This document shows, one piece after another, positions 1,706 through 10,700 of a DNA stretch of 64,000 nt. Position 1 is the stretch's first letter. The number at the start of each line of letters is the position of its first letter. The stretch is taken from the NCBI RefSeq assembly GCF_052425735.1, contig NC_135761.1:59210001-59274000 (forward strand). The letters are read 5' to 3'. The notes under the pieces are model-generated. The model saw nothing but the letters and a program-made list of their open reading frames with translations, searched no databases and had not been told where the DNA came from. Both the position numbers and the translations under genes were made by a program. Origin of the DNA: Oculina patagonica (Eukaryota).

Positions 1706-4700
1706 ACATTATCCTCCCTGCTCACTCATTAGCATTAATTATTGGGTAGTGACCCCTGACGAGAAAAGCTCGAGAGGGTATGCCGAAAGAACTAAGAGCA
1801 GCAGGGCGAGTGGTGGGTGGGCGCACCATCTATCCCTCATTTTTTATTAATTATTATTCATTTCAGTACACACAAAGAGAAAAACAAAACAAAACAAACA
1901 AAACAAAACAAAACAAAAGATAAAGATACGGTAACAATACTTCTTAAATCATCTATCCCTCGTATTAATTTACTTACTACCTTTACTGACTTACGTACAT
2001 AACATAAGGCCTCCACTTACTTACTATCTTTGGCCAACGTTCGCAACAACTGACAATTCTAATTAATTCCATTTTATTATATAATGCTAATGACGTCACT
2101 GGGGATGCTAATGAACTATGAATAGTACATTATCCTCCCTGCTCACTCATTAGCATTAAGTATTGGGTAGTGACCCCTGACTGCGCCTCTCCACAGACTG
2201 TGCCTTTATCAACCATTCCCTTTCTAACATACCTTCCATATCTTATTCCTTACACGTACCCATTCCTAATCCTATACCAAATCCCATACCTTATCCCATA
2301 CCTCATCCCATACCTAATCCAATGCCTTCTTTCATTTCTTATCCCATACCAATCCCTCAACCCCATTTCTGAATTCGAAGCATCATTATTCTTGCTGTGA
2401 CTAATTAATAACACTACTTGATTTCACACGAAAATAGCCAAATTACAAAACTACGTAAGTTTTCTCTAGGGTAATAATAGGCTATAATATCCGGTTTATT
2501 AAAACGACGCTGAGGTCCAAACAAAGCAAGCCAGGATAACGCTTATACCACCCGACCCCACCACTTGATTCGACGTAATACAATGTAAGCGGTGTCCACG
2601 CGATTTACGTTCCTCCAACCAACATGGGTCATAACGGATTCTAAAGTTACACGAATGAGATGTTAAATCACCCGCCGTTTTCTAAAATTTCCAAGAAGTT
2701 GCTGCGCGTCAAAAGACAAACTGCAGCTGGCCTGAGCTGACACGGAGTCGGCGAGAATTTAATACTAACGTCACATAGTGTTAAAATGCTTCAGTTCCCA
2801 TAATCGATCGGGCGTCAAGCTAGGTTTATTTTGGCGCGAAAAGTAAACAGTCCCGTACTATTCCTAAAACATTGTCCGCGATTGTTTACGCGATCTTCTT
2901 TTCCGAGAGGGAAGGTTCCCGGCCCACTAGCCCGCAACAAAAAGAGTTAACCGTTAAATCTTAAACCAAAATGTAAGTGGTATTGGTGACTTAAGCCTTC
3001 TTAAGGTCTCTTACTAGCGCTGCTACCTTTGTTAGCAATCAGGGCTCTGCTTCAATGAGGGAGCACTCCCGGCCAAAAGAAACCATTCTCGCACAGCCGC
3101 TGAATAAAACTTAGCTCCGTTAAGCTGTCAGATTATTGTAATCTGTTAATACAATGTCACTGAGAGTACCATTACAGTTGGTAAGTAAAATTGAGGCTAA
3201 TCGCAGAGCCGGTCCACTCTTTCGTAAATCCAGGATCGTGAAATCACCTTTATTTGGATTTGTAACTGGCAAACGCAACTTAACATACACGTCAGTTGAC
3301 AACATTCGTAGAAGGAACTGTTGTTATGTTCTAACCGGCGTTGCCAACCCAATCTCCCGCACGAAATTGTAGACAGTCTACAATGGTAACTCCAGACAGA
3401 TAATGTACACCGTCTACATTATTAGATTTCTGAGAAAAGACTGGAAGCGAATTCGCGGGATTCGCGCGGGGTTTTCTTTGCGTGTACAAAATGGCGGATG
3501 TTCGAGATCAACTGAGCGCTGTCACTGACGAAGCTAAGGAAGCTCTTGCCTCTCTAGAGTCGTCAGTGAAAGGTGGTGGAACGAAAAAGAAGGGTAAAAA
3601 ACGTCGAGTTGATATTCTGTATGACTCCTCCGGTTCACGTATTATAAAAAACCCAAGGAGAGCTTCTATAAAGATGGCTGAATCGCCAAATGAATCCACG
3701 TCCTCGACGAGATCAAACGGTGAGTACCAGTGGATACAGATGAATATTTGGATGGCTATGATTCAGTGTTGAATACTTGTTAAGTTTTCAAAGCTTGTGT
3801 TGTAGTTGGTGCCTCCAGTAGTCATGATAGCGACTTAGTGAGTGTCACTGCAGTGGATTCCATTCAAAGTGAAAGTGTGCCTGATGCAGATGATGATGCT
3901 GTTGATCTAGCTGTAGAGGTGGAATTTGACAGTGAAGAAAACGGTAAGTAAATCATTTCTTTAGGATTTTGAATTGTTAACATTTCCGAAACATTTTAGA
4001 CCATTGACTTAACTGCAGGCCAGCTTGTAGTCTAAAATTCATTTACTTATATTTCTTCAATTTATTCTTCTACAAAACAATGTTATCTGCACTTTTTCTT
4101 CTTTTATCGAAATTTTGTTTCTAAGATCCTGCCACGGCCTTTGTCATGACTCCTACAGACTGTCTGGTAATGACAACACTGCACAGTTAAAATTAGTGAT
4201 TATTGTTAATTGTGTTTTAATTGATAAGTAATCTGCAGTTATACACATGTCCTTATCACAGGTTAAAATTAACACGATCGACATCACTTATCAATTTGTT
4301 TGTCTATCTCTAGACTTCATGTTACAAGAGGCATTTGCCGATGCTGAAAAGCTAATTGAAGCTAATGTGGAGGCTACACAAATGACCTGGCAAACAAGGC
4401 AGACACGCCTTGAAACAAACTGGGAAGGCTTCAGGGCAAACCTTGCATATTATGCTATTTGCCAAGAAGCCTTAACCTTTCCACAACACTGCTCAAAGTG
4501 TTCTGAGGAATTAGAGCAGTGTGTTGTCCGTTGTCTGGATTGTGGCCCTGGTGTCTTGTTCTGTTCGGAGTGTGACATGCAAGCCCATGATCACTATCCA
4601 ATTCATGACAGAGAAGCATGGAATGGAAATTTTTTCAGACCCATTTTGCCAACTGAAGGTGTTGACTCTCAGGGAAAACTTATTTCTGTTGGTAAGTAAT

Positions 4701-6861
4701 GCCACAATGTTAATGTTTTATCTTTTTATTCACAATGATATAAACGTTGACATTTTAAAAATAAACTATATATGTATTGTACAGAGGCCCTGCCAGGGGA
4801 GGTTCCCATGTCACTTGTGTAAATTTAAAAATGTGCCATGTCGCTAGTTTATCAAACTTTGTGTCGCTTTCAGTGGTAAAATTGAAGGAAAATTACTTGT
4901 CGTTGTCGGAATTTAAGTTTTACCAAAAGGGTTGTCGTTTGTTGCGATTTGCTGTCGCGACTGAAAATGATTCTCCTAAGTACGTATGGTAACCTCTTAA
5001 TGTAATGGCTGATGTACATACAACAATCCTCCAAGTTAATTTTTTCCTTAGTGGCCATTTTGCCACCAGCTGCTCAGTTTGGTCACCAGTGAGAAATGTT
5101 AGTCGCTAAATTAAGCTCACGCTCTTAATGCTTCTCCTTAATTTTAGTTGCCAGGCTGCCGACTTTGGTTGCAATTTAGCCGCCAGCTCCAAAATTTTAA
5201 TCGCCATGTCAACTAAAAAGGGTCTTAACTTGAAGGGTTGTATAATAATTATTTTGTTGTTGATCAAGGGTAAGGTACATGATCAAGGTATTAGTTTACA
5301 CAGCCTACCTGATTAATAAATAAATATAATACATATCTTCTTTTGTTTTATGTTGTAGCTCGTTTTGTTCCATGCAGTGCTGATGCATTCTGTTGTTTTA
5401 AGTGCAAGGGCTCAGTGAAGGCCATACCTTCACAATCCAAGTGCATTTTGATAAATCTTAAAGGTCAGTCAATTTTTACGTGAAAGGTTGACTTGCAGAG
5501 TAGCCCCAGGGATTTGTTGCATCAATTTTGTTATGTTTGGTTATTGAGGACATTCAAGATTGTTTTGATGTCATGTTGATCCACATGTTCCAGGACCCCA
5601 CACATATTCAAAAAGTTGCACTCACCACACTGACCAGTCACGTGGACACACAAGTCTCCTTTAGAGTTGAAGGAAAATGCAGTGATTATATGAACAGTTC
5701 AGTTTTGTTCCATTTCAATGGTGTTAATTTGTGTTCAAGGAAATATCAATGTCCACCCCAAGGATGGTTAATTTTTTAATTTTTAGGGGGGATGCAATTT
5801 TGGGTTTCTCATCACAAAATGTGCATATGTAATTTGTAAAAAGCTAAACTGGGAATTACAGGGGGTAAGGGTTCAAATGAGAATCTTTTCTTTGAGGGTA
5901 TGATTATGATTATTTTTGTTGTTATTTTTGTAATTGTTATGATATATTGCCTTTGTAATGTTATATTGTTTTTTTTTTTCATCAGGACGATTTGACCTGC
6001 ATATGCCACAGATGTTCTGTGCCTCTTGTAATGTTGCAAGTGAGGTATCACTTGTTCATTTAGGATATTGGCCAGGCAGTCCCACCAATGCCTCATATTT
6101 TTTTGACCATGCTGTGTTTCAGTTTTGGGACATCATGCAAAAAAATATGCCAGGTTCATCTTCAAGTGCATTTGTAAAGACATTGGCTCAGATTTCAGAA
6201 AAGAAAGGCAGAGTAAGGGGTGTTTAATGTGAACTTAAATTATACTTTTTGGTGTTAATTACTACCGGTTACTACTACTTTTGACATAACCTTACTTTAC
6301 TTAACTAGTTTGGAATTTCTTTGTTACAGTCAGGCACAATCACCCCTGCCACATTTTCTAAAGCCTTTCAGGAATGGCGATATTGCCAGTTTGACCTAAG
6401 TCGAGAGAAGCGGGCACAGACTGCATGATTTGTCCATGCTGCTCGAAAGGTCAATTGGCTTGTCACATGGATGGCAACAGAAAGACATATCGCTGGAAAA
6501 AAGTAAATGCGTAAGTTGTAATCTTTGCATAAGCCTGGAATTCCATGGCTGCCTAGAATTTTATGTACACATTTTTTTTTTGTGTCAGCCTTTTGTGTCA
6601 TGTCTTTGTGTAGTCTTTATTTTGAGGAAATTTGTAAGCTTGTAGTTTGCATGTATTTTAATATTACTTTTAGTAGTTTCCATATTTACTATTACATATT
6701 GTTGTTGTGTTACAGTGGATCCCTTGAATCTTACTATGCTGACACATTCTTTTGTGATGACAAGAAGGTTAAAGATTCTTTGGAACAAACATACAAGCAT
6801 AAATCTGCCAAGGTATACAACATAAGTACTTAATTCTTCATTTGTATTAATGTAGTAAAAT

Positions 6862-7084: not shown

Positions 7085-7514
7085 AGTAAAATCAGTTTTT
7101 TTTTTTAAGTTTATAATATTGAACTTATTATTATGATTCAGTCTAAGCATTAGATTACAGTAACAAATGTTAATACAGTACTCATGTGGTACTTTTCTTA
7201 AGGGGTTATTAAATGGATACTTTTTCTGTTTTCTAAGGTAAATGGCCAAGACTCATGTGGTCAAGTGCATTGGCAGGCTGCCAAAACAAAAGCCAAATCC
7301 TTACAGAAGCTTGATGAGACTGGAGTAATGGTGGCTGGCTGTCGACATGCTTTGATGCAAAAGGCAGTTGACATGTGGACTGGGGAAATGTATGGAGCCC
7401 TATGGATTTTACCTCCAGGTAAGAGTACTGTTTAAGAGATATAAGGTATTACAATAGTCGAAGTATACAGTACAGGAGTCTTGCCTCATGCTATATATAT
7501 ATATATTTATATAT

Positions 7515-7766
7515 AAACAGTACTGTCTGCAGTTAGATATAGCTCTTTGGCATACAAAGCTTTGCTTTTATGTCCAAATTGAGCACTCTACTAGGATGAG
7601 TCATCGCCGCTAGCATTGCGCATGCTCACTAGTTTTGCTAGTTTGAGCACTCTGGCATGGCTTAGATGGTACCACAAGCGTGGGATCATTTGGGGTGGCT
7701 ATATAGCTTAACCTCCATCCTAGTCTCAGCACTGCACTGATGAGGCCCAGAAGGCCGAAACAGTAC
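7515..7766 (+). ncRNA. Retrozyme monomer (243-nt unit) with a circularly permuted type I hammerhead ribozyme
   Basis: 5' half CTGCA-CTGATGA-GGCC-CAGAA-GGCC-GAAAC-AGTAC at 7732-7766. 3' half AAACAGTACT-GTC-TGCAG at 7515-7532. The overlap AAACAGTAC recurs at 243-nt spacing. Confidence 0.85.
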
Positions 7767-10700
7767 CTAATATACTGTTTATGGTTGTGTTGTATGTGTT
7801 TGTTTTTGACTCATTAATTTCAGTTACATAATGCAGTGGGAACATTCTTTTCTTTTTTTTATCTGTGTTTACATGCCAAGCTTAAGGGATTGATCTCTTA
7901 TTATTATCATAAGCATTCTTTTTATATATTTTTTTTCCAATCCTGTTGTTTTGTGCATAATCACAGAAATACGTGCTTCCCTCTTCTGGTGTAAAGTTTC
8001 TGTTCTATGATGTCATTTGCAAATACTGGCCTTGGATGCAGAAAGTGTGCCAGAGTCTTAACCAAACAGCAGATACATCTATGATTCCAGCTTTGGGTCA
8101 GATGCATGGGAAGTTGCACAAGTCGACTTGTAGAGTAAGTCTTTATGGTGTCTAAGACCAAGCATACTGGGTGTCATTGCGATTAGCCTATATTGCTACA
8201 CAAGAGTCTACCTTGTAAGCAATGTATGTGAAAGTGACTTTTTACTATTGAACCCAAGGTACTGTTTGGGAGCCAATGGCAGGATGGGGCAGGGCTAACC
8301 ACAGGTGAAGAAATGGAAACAGCTTTCCAATACTTGTCAAGGTGCGGTTCAACCACAAAGAACATGTCAAGGGCAGGTTGGTGTATAATTTATTTCACTT
8401 ATCTGTGACCAGAATAAAACAGCTATGGTTTATATTATGTTCTTGTGGTGTACCAGAACATTATTTGCTCAATTAAATATAAACAAACTAATTGTTCTTT
8501 AAAAACTTTGATTTCATTTTAGGACGTATGGAGCATTTGACAGAACATGTCCTGTTCTGGAATGAAAGAAAGATACTGTCCTTGCCTAAATACTTATCAT
8601 TACGTTATGTGAAGGTTTGCTTTTGTTTTTTTCTACACTACACTTGTAAGGTCACTATGTGCCCACCATCCTGGCCCAAAGTTTTGGCCGCATGCAGTTA
8701 CATTGCAATTTACCAAACTGAAATATAGTAAATAAGAACAGTACCCTGCTTAAGATTCATTCATCCTCAAATAACAAATGTCGAGGCAAAATTAGTGTGG
8801 GGGTACTAATGTGTAGTTTGCAGGTCTGAAATCGTCAACACTGCAAACATTATGAGCCCGTCAGTAGTTCCTTTTTGTTCTTTTGTTCTGTCGTTCCTTA
8901 ATTAATGTGTTCACTCACTCAGTTTTTTGTTTTTTTATTAACAGTTCAGGTGTTCATATATATTTAACAATATTTTTACTCCCTATGGTTTTCCTTTGTA
9001 GATCCTTAGAGAAATCGAAACTCAAAGTGATGAACTCGTCAAAACCGGAGTCACAGAAACAGTGCTTAAAGGGTGGAAAAACGAGATAATCAGAGCAGCA
9101 CAAGGTATGTATATGTTGTTTAAAGTCATGTTTGTTTATGTAGTGGTTGATTCATTTATGAATTCATTATTTGTGTGTTTTTAATGTTTAACATTTTTTA
9201 ATTATACATTCGCAAATTGAAAATGGCCTTTTTTCAGTTCATAGTCAGTTCAGCGTATTCAAAGGACAAATTTCAGCCTTCATTTCAGTCGTGACTCATA
9301 AGTGCAAAGCATTCTCCTGGCAAATTTTGGGCTTCATTTCGGCCAAACGTTAAACTCACTTATATTATAATATTTTTTTTAGATGAAGAAGCTTCCAGTT
9401 CTGGTGCGAGTGACAATGAGAGGGCGGAGTACTTCAGACTTTCCCAAGAAATCAAGGAGACTGAAGCACTGGAGCAGTTCAGTGCCATTTCTAGTCACTC
9501 CATTTCAGTTTTGGTTGGCAACTCATCGTTCTTCAAGCAGGCCAATCAACTCCTGGAAGACCTTGACAAGAAAAAACTCCGGCTTGCAACTCTAAGGAGT
9601 AAATTGTTACAAGACGGTGTGGATGAAGGACTGTTGGAGAGTGCTGGTCTTAGTCACTTGCAGAGTCAGTGGCGCAGACCATCCGCGATAAGATCGTGTG
9701 CTCCATGTCTTTGATAAGACAACGTCAGGAGATGATAAACAAGGAGGCAGGTTGGTGGATGATCGAGTGGTGACATGAATACTAATTTTTAACTATGACT
9801 TTTTAATTATGAAGTACTACTGAGATATACGATTCAATCTTGTTCCTTAATTTCAGCTTACTCAAAACAGCGCTCTAAACTAAGAAAAAAGAATGACGCA
9901 GAAAAGAAAGCTGTAATGTGGGAACGCGCCACATGGGCGAGAAACAAAGGCAAACGAGTGGGCGTGAAAAAACCCTAACCGAGAACTGTAGACACCCAAG
10001 CAAAAGCCTACAGTGGCGCTCAGCCGAAAAAATATGACAGTGCAAAAATTACCTCCAAACCTTCCTTCTTCAGAGGCTTGGCGGGTTCTTGGGGCGTCAA
10101 AGCAGAACTTGTATTGGTATCCAGCAAAGACGGCTGCGAAGCCGAAAAAAGACTTACAACAACCAGAGTTAACGCGTTAACGGCCGACGATACAGGAACC
10201 GGTGCAGAGACAGAAGCTGGAGGAACTTGAGTTGTCACAGATGGCTAAACTAAAAATAGTTGAGGCCGGATCCTGTCGTCCACGCTAGTCGGGAGCAGCA
10301 TTTCGAAAACTGCGCTTAGTCTATCCATGGCCAACGTTCGCAACAACTGACAATTCTAATTAATTCCATTTTATTATACAATGCTAATGACGTCATTGGG
10401 GATGCTAATGAACTATGAATAGTGTTTATTTGCATACATCGAAAACGAATCAATTTGCACATCACTTTAGGCAGGAAAATGCACGAGGAACACTAAGAAA
10501 AAGACACCCGTCTGGTACTTCTGTTTGATAGCTGATGACTTCACGAGCAACTGCACTTATCCTCTAGATCAAGAAGTAAGTAGTTCCGATCTAAAGAGAA
10601 ATTAATTTTGACACTTGATTTGACCCCTATTTTCATGGCAGCGCGGTCTACGAAACTTAAATGGCTTGAATACTATTTCTTAAAAATATATTGGTCCAAA

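Follow-up and report, generated by a model that had tools for sequence, protein, structure and literature searches.

The 252-nt insert at positions 7515–7766 of the window (the 64,000-nt stretch of Oculina patagonica DNA analyzed here) is, with a probability that we put at roughly 0.88, a dead, solo, 1.03-unit copy of a 244-nt non-LTR retrozyme of stony corals, belonging to a family that would be copied by a borrowed reverse transcriptase from (TA)n sites. Retrozymes are protein-free retroelements with a type I hammerhead ribozyme in each unit. The present element is already known in kind, since hammerhead retrozymes of stony corals were reported and examined by experiment in 2020. What modest value the case has therefore lies not in the element itself, which is nothing new, but in the family-wide insertion anatomy and in two unit-length copies that are opened within the stem III palindrome.

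An earlier note on this DNA, made from the letters alone, had described a circularly permuted hammerhead, with the core and stem II at the 3′ end of the insert and the GUC triplet and stem I partner at its 5′ end. Every element of both halves proves correct base for base, with the cleavage point after C7527. The parts of the insert and its immediate flanks are as follows.

7492..7514, no strand: TA-rich microsatellite remnant at the 5′ junction, the usual family target (from the sequence and the junction statistics of 36 insertions)
7515..7766, plus strand: retrozyme insert of 252 nt, equal to one 243-nt unit and a 9-nt terminal redundancy (family unit positions 232 to 240)
7515..7523, plus strand: left copy of the 9-nt direct repeat AAACAGTAC; insertion L002 begins at the same position
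7520..7527, plus strand: 3′ strand of stem III (GUACUGU) and C17; predicted cleavage after C7527, the sole site in the insert
7528..7533, plus strand: 3′ strand of stem I (UGCAGU), partner of 7731–7736 in the fold
7731..7736, plus strand: 5′ strand of stem I (ACUGCA), from the predicted fold
7737..7743, plus strand: conserved core CUGAUGA, from the sequence and from the Rfam alignment at array junctions
7744..7756, plus strand: stem II hairpin GGCC-CAGAA-GGCC, pair probability 1.00 in the isolated insert
7757..7766, plus strand: core GAA, then the 5′ strand of stem III (ACAGUAC), 7 bp possible with 7520–7526 across the insert
7758..7766, plus strand: right copy of the 9-nt direct repeat AAACAGTAC, the atypical 3′ end of the insert
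7773..7782, plus strand: TACTGTTTAT, which repeats the left junction ATAAACAGTA (7513–7522) as its reverse complement; as RNA it pairs with 7758–7765 and competes with stem III

In letters, the 3′ end of the insert reads CTGCA (7732–7736), CTGATGA (7737–7743), GAAA (7757–7760) and CAGTAC (7761–7766), and the 5′ end reads CTGTC (7523–7527) and TGCAG (7528–7532). The two halves overlap, as had been claimed, by AAACAGTAC, which recurs with a period of 243, and the description of the insert as about one monomer agrees with its length of 1.03 units. Compared with the family majority, which we built from 20 units and used solely for counting differences, the inserted unit differs at 9 of 243 positions, none of them in the hammerhead core. 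Contigs from the DNA of another public coral sample cover 7424–7599 and 7737–8100; because these contigs span both junctions and differ from the window at several flank positions, the insertion is real, exists beyond this one assembly and is no assembly artefact.

Used as a query, the 252-nt insert gives at least 57 matches in the same 529-Mb genome, at 87–96% identity and with a best E value of 6e-114. Some of the family stands in head-to-tail arrays of 2–3.1 units with a period of 244–245, the kind of tandem copies for which the note had proposed a genome search, and the three-unit arrays are 99% identical internally. A complete hammerhead is found at each array junction, so that the molecule obtained on paper by joining the two halves of the insert exists as a contiguous motif at natural tandem junctions of the same family. 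This joined 34-nt motif occurs 62–65 times in the genome, compared with 0 occurrences of a reversed-pattern control, and the resemblance to a hammerhead is far beyond chance. The unit has a GC content of 0.46 and no ORF (no stretch free of stops in a trimer exceeds 64 codons), and its fold is stabler than those of dinucleotide-preserving shuffles (z −2.4 to −3.4). The family has several of the properties by which metazoan non-LTR retrozymes are recognized, namely tandem repeats of 150–450 bp with a type I hammerhead per unit, of which the window copy is a solo unit; non-coding sequence of less than 50% GC that lacks LTR, PBS and PPT and forms a stable self-paired monomer; and dispersed copies from retrotransposition, here 34 independent insertions with a (TA)n target and a constant 3′ end. 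Sequence comparison places the insert in this dispersed and tandemly arrayed 244-nt family with type I hammerheads.

The genome also contains other sequences of related interest. An initial look at the whole genome gave about 70,000 hammerhead candidates. Rfam searches of seven array loci returned tRNA-like genes only (Rfam tRNA, 61 bits; L006 538–609 and 1222–1293, and L005 2087–2158), which sit at most ~70 nt from retrozyme arrays and one of which is repeated at a distance of 684 nt. Two retrozyme copies of assembly G000, at C4:30251762–30251805 (plus strand) and C4:30320250–30320293 (minus strand), are 87% identical to the window copy, with stem II enlarged by a 10-nt insertion; their inverted placement 68 kb apart suggests a duplicated block. 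At G000:C13:78909–78953 (minus strand), 79 kb from the chromosome end, is a different hammerhead that has the same stem III and cleavage site (GAAACAGTACTGTC) and a long stem II (GTGGGCCAAC...GTTGGCCTAC). Finally, 26 loci (L032–L056, hammerhead at 1501–1545 in each) form a large, near-identical family with the motif ACTCTG-CTGAAGA-GACCcaatcaGGTC-GAAACAGCTGTC^CAGAGT, which matches Rfam Hammerhead_1 at 50.8 bits and whose copies often occur as inverted or tandem pairs 400–850 nt apart.

The conserved parts of a type I hammerhead (CUGANGA, GAAA and an A15.1–U16.1 pair before an H17 other than G at the cleavage site) are all present in the insert, with CUGAUGA at 7737–7743, GAAA at 7757–7760 and ...CUGUC^ at 7523–7527, and these parts are contiguous at the array junctions. 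In the minimum-energy fold of the insert, three helices form about the core, as in a hammerhead whose helix I is open-ended: a stem I of 6 bp, a stem II of 4 bp and, across the insert, a stem III of 7 bp, a length that it reaches because of the palindrome. Within arrays, stem III is predicted to be a local hairpin of 3–4 bp. When the 252-nt RNA is folded alone, the hammerhead three-way junction is the minimum-energy structure, with pair probabilities of 0.8–1.0; positions 7520–7526 pair with 7760–7766 (7 bp), C7527 is unpaired and 7528–7533 pair with 7731–7736. Rfam, which the note had proposed as a check on the joined motif, gives a mixed answer. At gathering thresholds the window has 0 matches, as expected when the motif is split across 200 nt. 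At the tandem junctions, the best match is Hammerhead_HH9 (22.9 bits, E 0.005 in 901 nt), and all core bases are aligned in place, but this score falls short of the gathering threshold of 52 for the hammerhead model; the short stem III and stem II suit the models poorly. Self-cleavage of the Oculina RNA is predicted by analogy with the Acropora millepora homologue, whose core, stem I and stem III are the same and whose self-cleavage has been shown.

A clue to how the family spreads is the anatomy of its insertions, for which we mapped 36 of about 50 copies. Three of these (L016, L018 and L020, on contig C4) are segmental duplicates with identical flanks, leaving 34 insertions that count as independent, have unrelated flanks and lie on most chromosomes. 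Nearly all of them (32 of 34) end at unit positions 8–15, where ...GUC^UGCAGUUA(G)AUAUA runs straight into TA repeats. Their 5′ ends differ, so that copies measure 0.20 to 3.11 units (more than one unit in 18/34), and are enriched in the hammerhead region, with 18/34 falling within 24% of the unit (p = 3e-4); three copies begin at most 1 base from the cleavage site (unit positions 1, 1 and 2). A run of (TA)3 or longer is present at a junction in 30/36 insertions, compared with 1.2% of control 14-mers from the same loci. A constant 3′ end, together with graded truncation at the 5′ side and joins at microhomology, is what marks target-primed reverse transcription. Moreover, because the constant 3′ end lies past the cleavage site, every template had a hammerhead site that was either uncut or re-ligated. 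The same holds for the window copy, which contains the cleavage site within it, so that the note was right to propose a circular or multimeric template. As judged from the sequences, a circle and an unprocessed multimer would fit the data alike.

We propose the following route of copying. Source transcripts of tandem arrays would cut themselves at each hammerhead to yield unit-length RNAs, which could then be circularized, as has been shown in the A. millepora relative. A borrowed reverse transcriptase, probably that of a (TA)n-targeting Penelope-like element, would take a nicked (TA)n microsatellite as its primer. The primer would anneal at the conserved UAGAUAUA, 8–14 nt downstream of the cleavage site, and the enzyme would copy the RNA backwards through the intact hammerhead site for 0.2 to 3.1 units, after which the 5′ end would be joined, often at A/T microhomology. 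For the window copy, synthesis may have both started and stopped in the stem III palindrome (CAGTACTG), in which case one unit and 9 nt would have been copied. With both ends in the palindrome, the halves of the hammerhead come to lie at opposite ends of the insert.

A 2020 review describes metazoan retrozymes as having no conserved motif that points to a helper enzyme (PMC7761336). In the present case, several observations point to Penelope-like elements as the likely source of the enzyme. A (TA)n insertion bias of these elements is published (PMC8557442). The Oculina genome contains at least 150 GIY-YIG matches, and two of the 34 retrozyme insertions (L007 and L012) abut the ends of GIY-YIG ORFs in the same orientation, with only TA repeats between. 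The abutting Penelope-like elements have a hammerhead-like motif of their own in the 3′ region and a (TA)n terminus. The target and the insertion anatomy of the retrozyme are thus those expected of a non-autonomous partner of an autonomous Penelope-like element resident in the same genome. Shared sequence is another matter. Motif searches of the genome found no Penelope-like element with the hammerhead or 3′ tail of the retrozyme, and with stem II relaxed they returned only two retrozyme variants and one unrelated C13 motif; the tails of the adjacent Penelope-like elements differ from the retrozyme tail except in the terminal TA run. Because no Penelope-like element shares the hammerhead or tail, we infer rather than identify the helper, and the adjacency may merely reflect a common microsatellite target. 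ORFs beside other hammerhead families were considered as helpers and rejected, being host genes (Branch enzyme, F-box/WD40) or having no Pfam match.

The two loci at which retrozyme and Penelope-like element adjoin are composite. At L007 (1–1357; G000:C7:21241348–21242704), the 3′ part of a Penelope-like element encodes a GIY-YIG domain (E 4.7e-8) in an ORF that stops at 1002 and has the hammerhead-like motif CUGAGGA...GAAAUAUA^GGUGA at about 1207–1245; the element terminates in ...GTGGAAAAT joined to (TA)12, immediately beyond which lies a retrozyme copy of 1.69 units. L012 (1773–3254; G000:C1:846919–848400) is a (TA)n insertion hot spot, in which a 2.07-unit retrozyme is followed by a 5′-truncated Penelope-like element (ORF 1859–2716, GIY-YIG), then by the 108-nt tail of a second type of Penelope-like element (2966–3070) and finally by long TA runs and, where the locus ends, the same 108-nt tail inverted. 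The tail at 2966–3070 starts exactly at its own hammerhead cleavage site, mirroring the retrozyme copies that start at TGCAG.

Within the family, the window copy has an ordinary 5′ junction, with a TA-rich flank (7492–7514) and a start base in common with L002, and an odd 3′ end, stopping at ...GAAACAGTAC in the stem III palindrome, 12–19 nt short of the constant family 3′ end. Among the 36 mapped insertions, only L017 likewise has both ends in the palindrome (243/244 nt, at a non-TA site). In addition, ATAAACAGTA (7513–7522, including two flank bases) is inverted at 7773–7782, an arrangement unique to the window copy among the 36. Searches for an empty site gave none: the flanks of the insert occur once in the genome, apart from a paralogue that is partial and reaches no further than window 7395, JGI metagenome contigs scanned twice for exact words yielded 0, and the public Logan contigs examined contain no empty allele. 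Whatever the origin of its 3′ end, the window copy is a footprint and not a source, since an insert with a single cleavage site can release neither unit RNA nor a circle.

A different account of the 9-nt repeat is possible, although we would not wager on it. One exact 243-nt unit from a circular monomer, of RNA or cDNA, could have integrated at a pre-existing AAACAGTAC by a Campbell-like or microhomology-primed join, in which case the repeat would reflect target homology and not overshoot by reverse transcriptase. The period of the repeat is one unit, and L017, at 243/244 nt, has both ends in the same palindrome at a non-TA site. Furthermore, an empty site with a single AAACAGTAC would form a contiguous 10-bp hairpin with 7773–7782, which mildly favors homology over overshoot. 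This account nevertheless requires a pre-existing 9-nt match to the element, whereas L002, an ordinary insertion, has the same start base and no such repeat; no empty site was found in the genome or the JGI metagenome contigs, and there are only two examples. Both processes could also operate in one family. Tentatively, UAGAUAUA might prime on nicked (TA)n for the enzyme of a Penelope-like element, with intact-site templates, and the window copy and L017 might be footprints of circular monomers that arrived by a second, homology-guided route. If true, the family anatomy would be the missing sequence handle on the mobilization of metazoan retrozymes. The constant 3′ end, (TA)n target, 5′ ends at the cleavage site and adjacency to Penelope-like elements make the idea of such a helper testable with defined sequences.

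It is improbable that the odd 3′ end arose later, from a standard insertion of 1.1 units that at first had the canonical 3′ end (...GTC^TGCAGTTA-ATATA and a TA repeat) and went on to lose ~10 nt (TGTCTGCAGT), which would make the repeat accidental. In its favor, L002, a canonical copy of 268 nt, begins at the same unit position, the bases that directly follow 7766 (CTAATATA) look like two variants of the canonical tail, TTAAATATA and TTATATATA, and the window copy, with its 9 differences, is relatively old. However, a deletion would have to be combined with one or two substitutions, and both the inverted repeat at 7773–7782 and the parallel case of L017 would be left unexplained.

With the insert read as a solo copy left by reverse transcription, its place in the host sequence can be considered. 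The surrounding features are those of a KDZ transposase-like gene.

5958–6227, plus strand: CxC3 domain (Pfam, 3e-21)
7265..7419, plus strand: upstream coding block homologous to KDZ transposase (Pfam KDZ positions 56–99), followed by the consensus donor CAG|GTAAGA
7973..8155, plus strand: downstream KDZ-homologous coding block (Pfam KDZ positions 120–166, 5e-3, below cut-off)

The insert and both KDZ-homologous blocks are on the plus strand, so that the note was right to give the insert the sense of the KDZ gene. Its placement of the insert in an intron is borne out in part. The insert does lie between two same-strand KDZ-homologous blocks, with a strong donor, CAG|GTAAGA, at 7419|7420 and acceptors at 7966 and 7996, but among the GT-AG pairs checked the reading frame is kept only with a weak donor at 7430 and not with the strong donor at 7420. 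The insert thus occupies a stretch without coding sequence inside a KDZ transposase-like gene, and this stretch is plausibly an intron. The gene copy may be decaying. The Pfam KDZ match to positions 56–99 spans 7265–7435 (1e-7), and the only paralogue of the upstream block (L062 1654; G000:C4:49951796) is 99% identical and diverges at window 7395; at 7396, 4 nt are missing from the contigs of two further DNA samples. Positions 7395–7396, which also mark the end of the KDZ homology of the block in Pfam, may be a gene breakpoint or a frameshift.

The public runs in which the sequence occurs carry the label coral, and RNA runs were examined as Logan assembled contigs. Coral RNA-seq contigs match only the retrozyme part, at ~90–95% identity, and some run into the genomic flanks of other copies. 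The presence of family sequence in these contigs indicates that the family, or close relatives of it in other corals, is transcribed. Neither a back-junction nor a unit-length RNA is seen in the coral RNA contigs, which as assembled contigs cannot reveal circles, and two RNA runs gave no contig over the flanks of the window copy.

The note had further suggested that pairing across the insert might still permit cleavage of the host transcript. Structurally this is possible for the RNA in isolation, but the suggestion fares poorly once the flanks are included. With 35 to 200 nt of flank, 7758–7765 pair with 7773–7780, and the active fold lies 2.7–5.8 kcal/mol higher, with a probability of ~0.01; the downstream inverted repeat captures the 3′ arm and thereby disfavors the active fold in the flanked transcript. 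By this model, regular cleavage of the host transcript would be unlikely, and a short kinetic window during transcription is possible. We therefore regard as very unlikely the idea that the split hammerhead functions as a cis-regulatory ribozyme, cutting the KDZ pre-mRNA in its intron after C7527. Its core bases are all intact, it lies in the sense of the gene, and the isolated 252-nt RNA folds fully (stem III 7 bp, stem I 6 bp, probabilities 0.8–0.9). Against this stand the near loss of the active fold in its flanked context, the absence of flank transcripts from the two assembled RNA runs, a frame across the gap that cannot be closed with the strong splice sites, and the status of the insert as one of ~45 dispersed copies that show no trace of selection. 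When the KDZ transposase-like gene is annotated, the copy can be treated as a harmless passenger within its non-coding gap.

That the family is instead ordinary satellite DNA spread by duplication at the DNA level, or a chance likeness to a hammerhead, is scarcely credible, since the segmental duplicates L016, L018 and L020 on C4, with identical flanks, fit such spread but the other 34 insertions are unrelated in their flanks, end alike at the 3′ side and are truncated to graded extents at the 5′ side, the control for the motif gave 0 matches, and experiments have shown activity of the hammerhead in the close relative from A. millepora.

The closest known system to this retrozyme family is that of A. 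millepora, for which Cervera and de la Peña 2020 (NAR, PMC7229834) described a non-LTR retrozyme with 225/245-nt tandem units and a canonical type I hammerhead. They measured self-cleavage at about 0.8 per min, found linear and circular RNAs by northern blot and RT-PCR, and stated that similar sequences exist in other stony corals (PMC7229834). The two families are alike in unit size (244 nt here and about 245 nt there), tandem arrays, lack of an ORF, GC content below 50% and self-paired fold, and they have identical stem I, core, stem III and cleavage site, as well as the next 23 nt. From stem I through 23 nt past the cleavage site, clone Amil224 (PMC7229834 supplement) is identical to the present family at 64/67 nt, with differences in these 67 nt only in the stem II loop, and the remainder of the unit is visibly homologous. 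That loop is AGAAA in A. millepora and CAGAA here, and a motif search found 0 occurrences of the A. millepora variant in this genome, which makes the Oculina element a sister family in another coral and not a new kind. The families also differ in scale, with about 1500 motifs and arrays of up to 62-mers in A. millepora, compared with ~45 insertions and arrays of at most 3.1 units here. Cleavage and circles were shown by experiment in A. millepora.

Penelope-like elements reportedly carry hammerheads in pseudo-LTRs, as Cervera and de la Peña are said to have found in 2014. Such elements resemble the retrozyme in having type I hammerheads, head-to-tail partial tandems and 5′ truncation, as well as a (TA)n target (Craig et al. 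2021, PMC8557442) that hides target-site duplications. In both, some copies begin exactly at the cleavage site (retrozyme copies L021 and L023; the Penelope-like tail at L012 2966–3070). Unlike these elements, the retrozyme has no RT/GIY-YIG ORF, and in place of a minimal dimeric hammerhead it has a real stem III, of the canonical retrozyme type. A 2026 preprint by Li, Clavereau & Pollet argues that animal retrozymes derive from Penelope-like elements.

More distant parallels exist in other non-autonomous elements. Plant LTR retrozymes (Cervera, Urbina & de la Peña 2016, PMC4918200) are likewise non-autonomous, with hammerheads that excise a unit RNA that is then circularized and reverse-transcribed, but they have type III hammerheads, LTRs, PBS/PPT, 4-bp TSDs and mobilization by Gypsy elements, none of which is found here. 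SINEs and LINEs offer another parallel. Their target-primed reverse transcription also gives a constant 3′ end, graded 5′ truncation and 5′ microhomology, and also needs the enzyme of a partner. By contrast, the retrozyme has neither poly(A) nor a LINE-derived tail, and priming would occur at an internal TA-rich motif; because such priming is internal to a repeating or circular template, retrozyme copies may exceed one unit.
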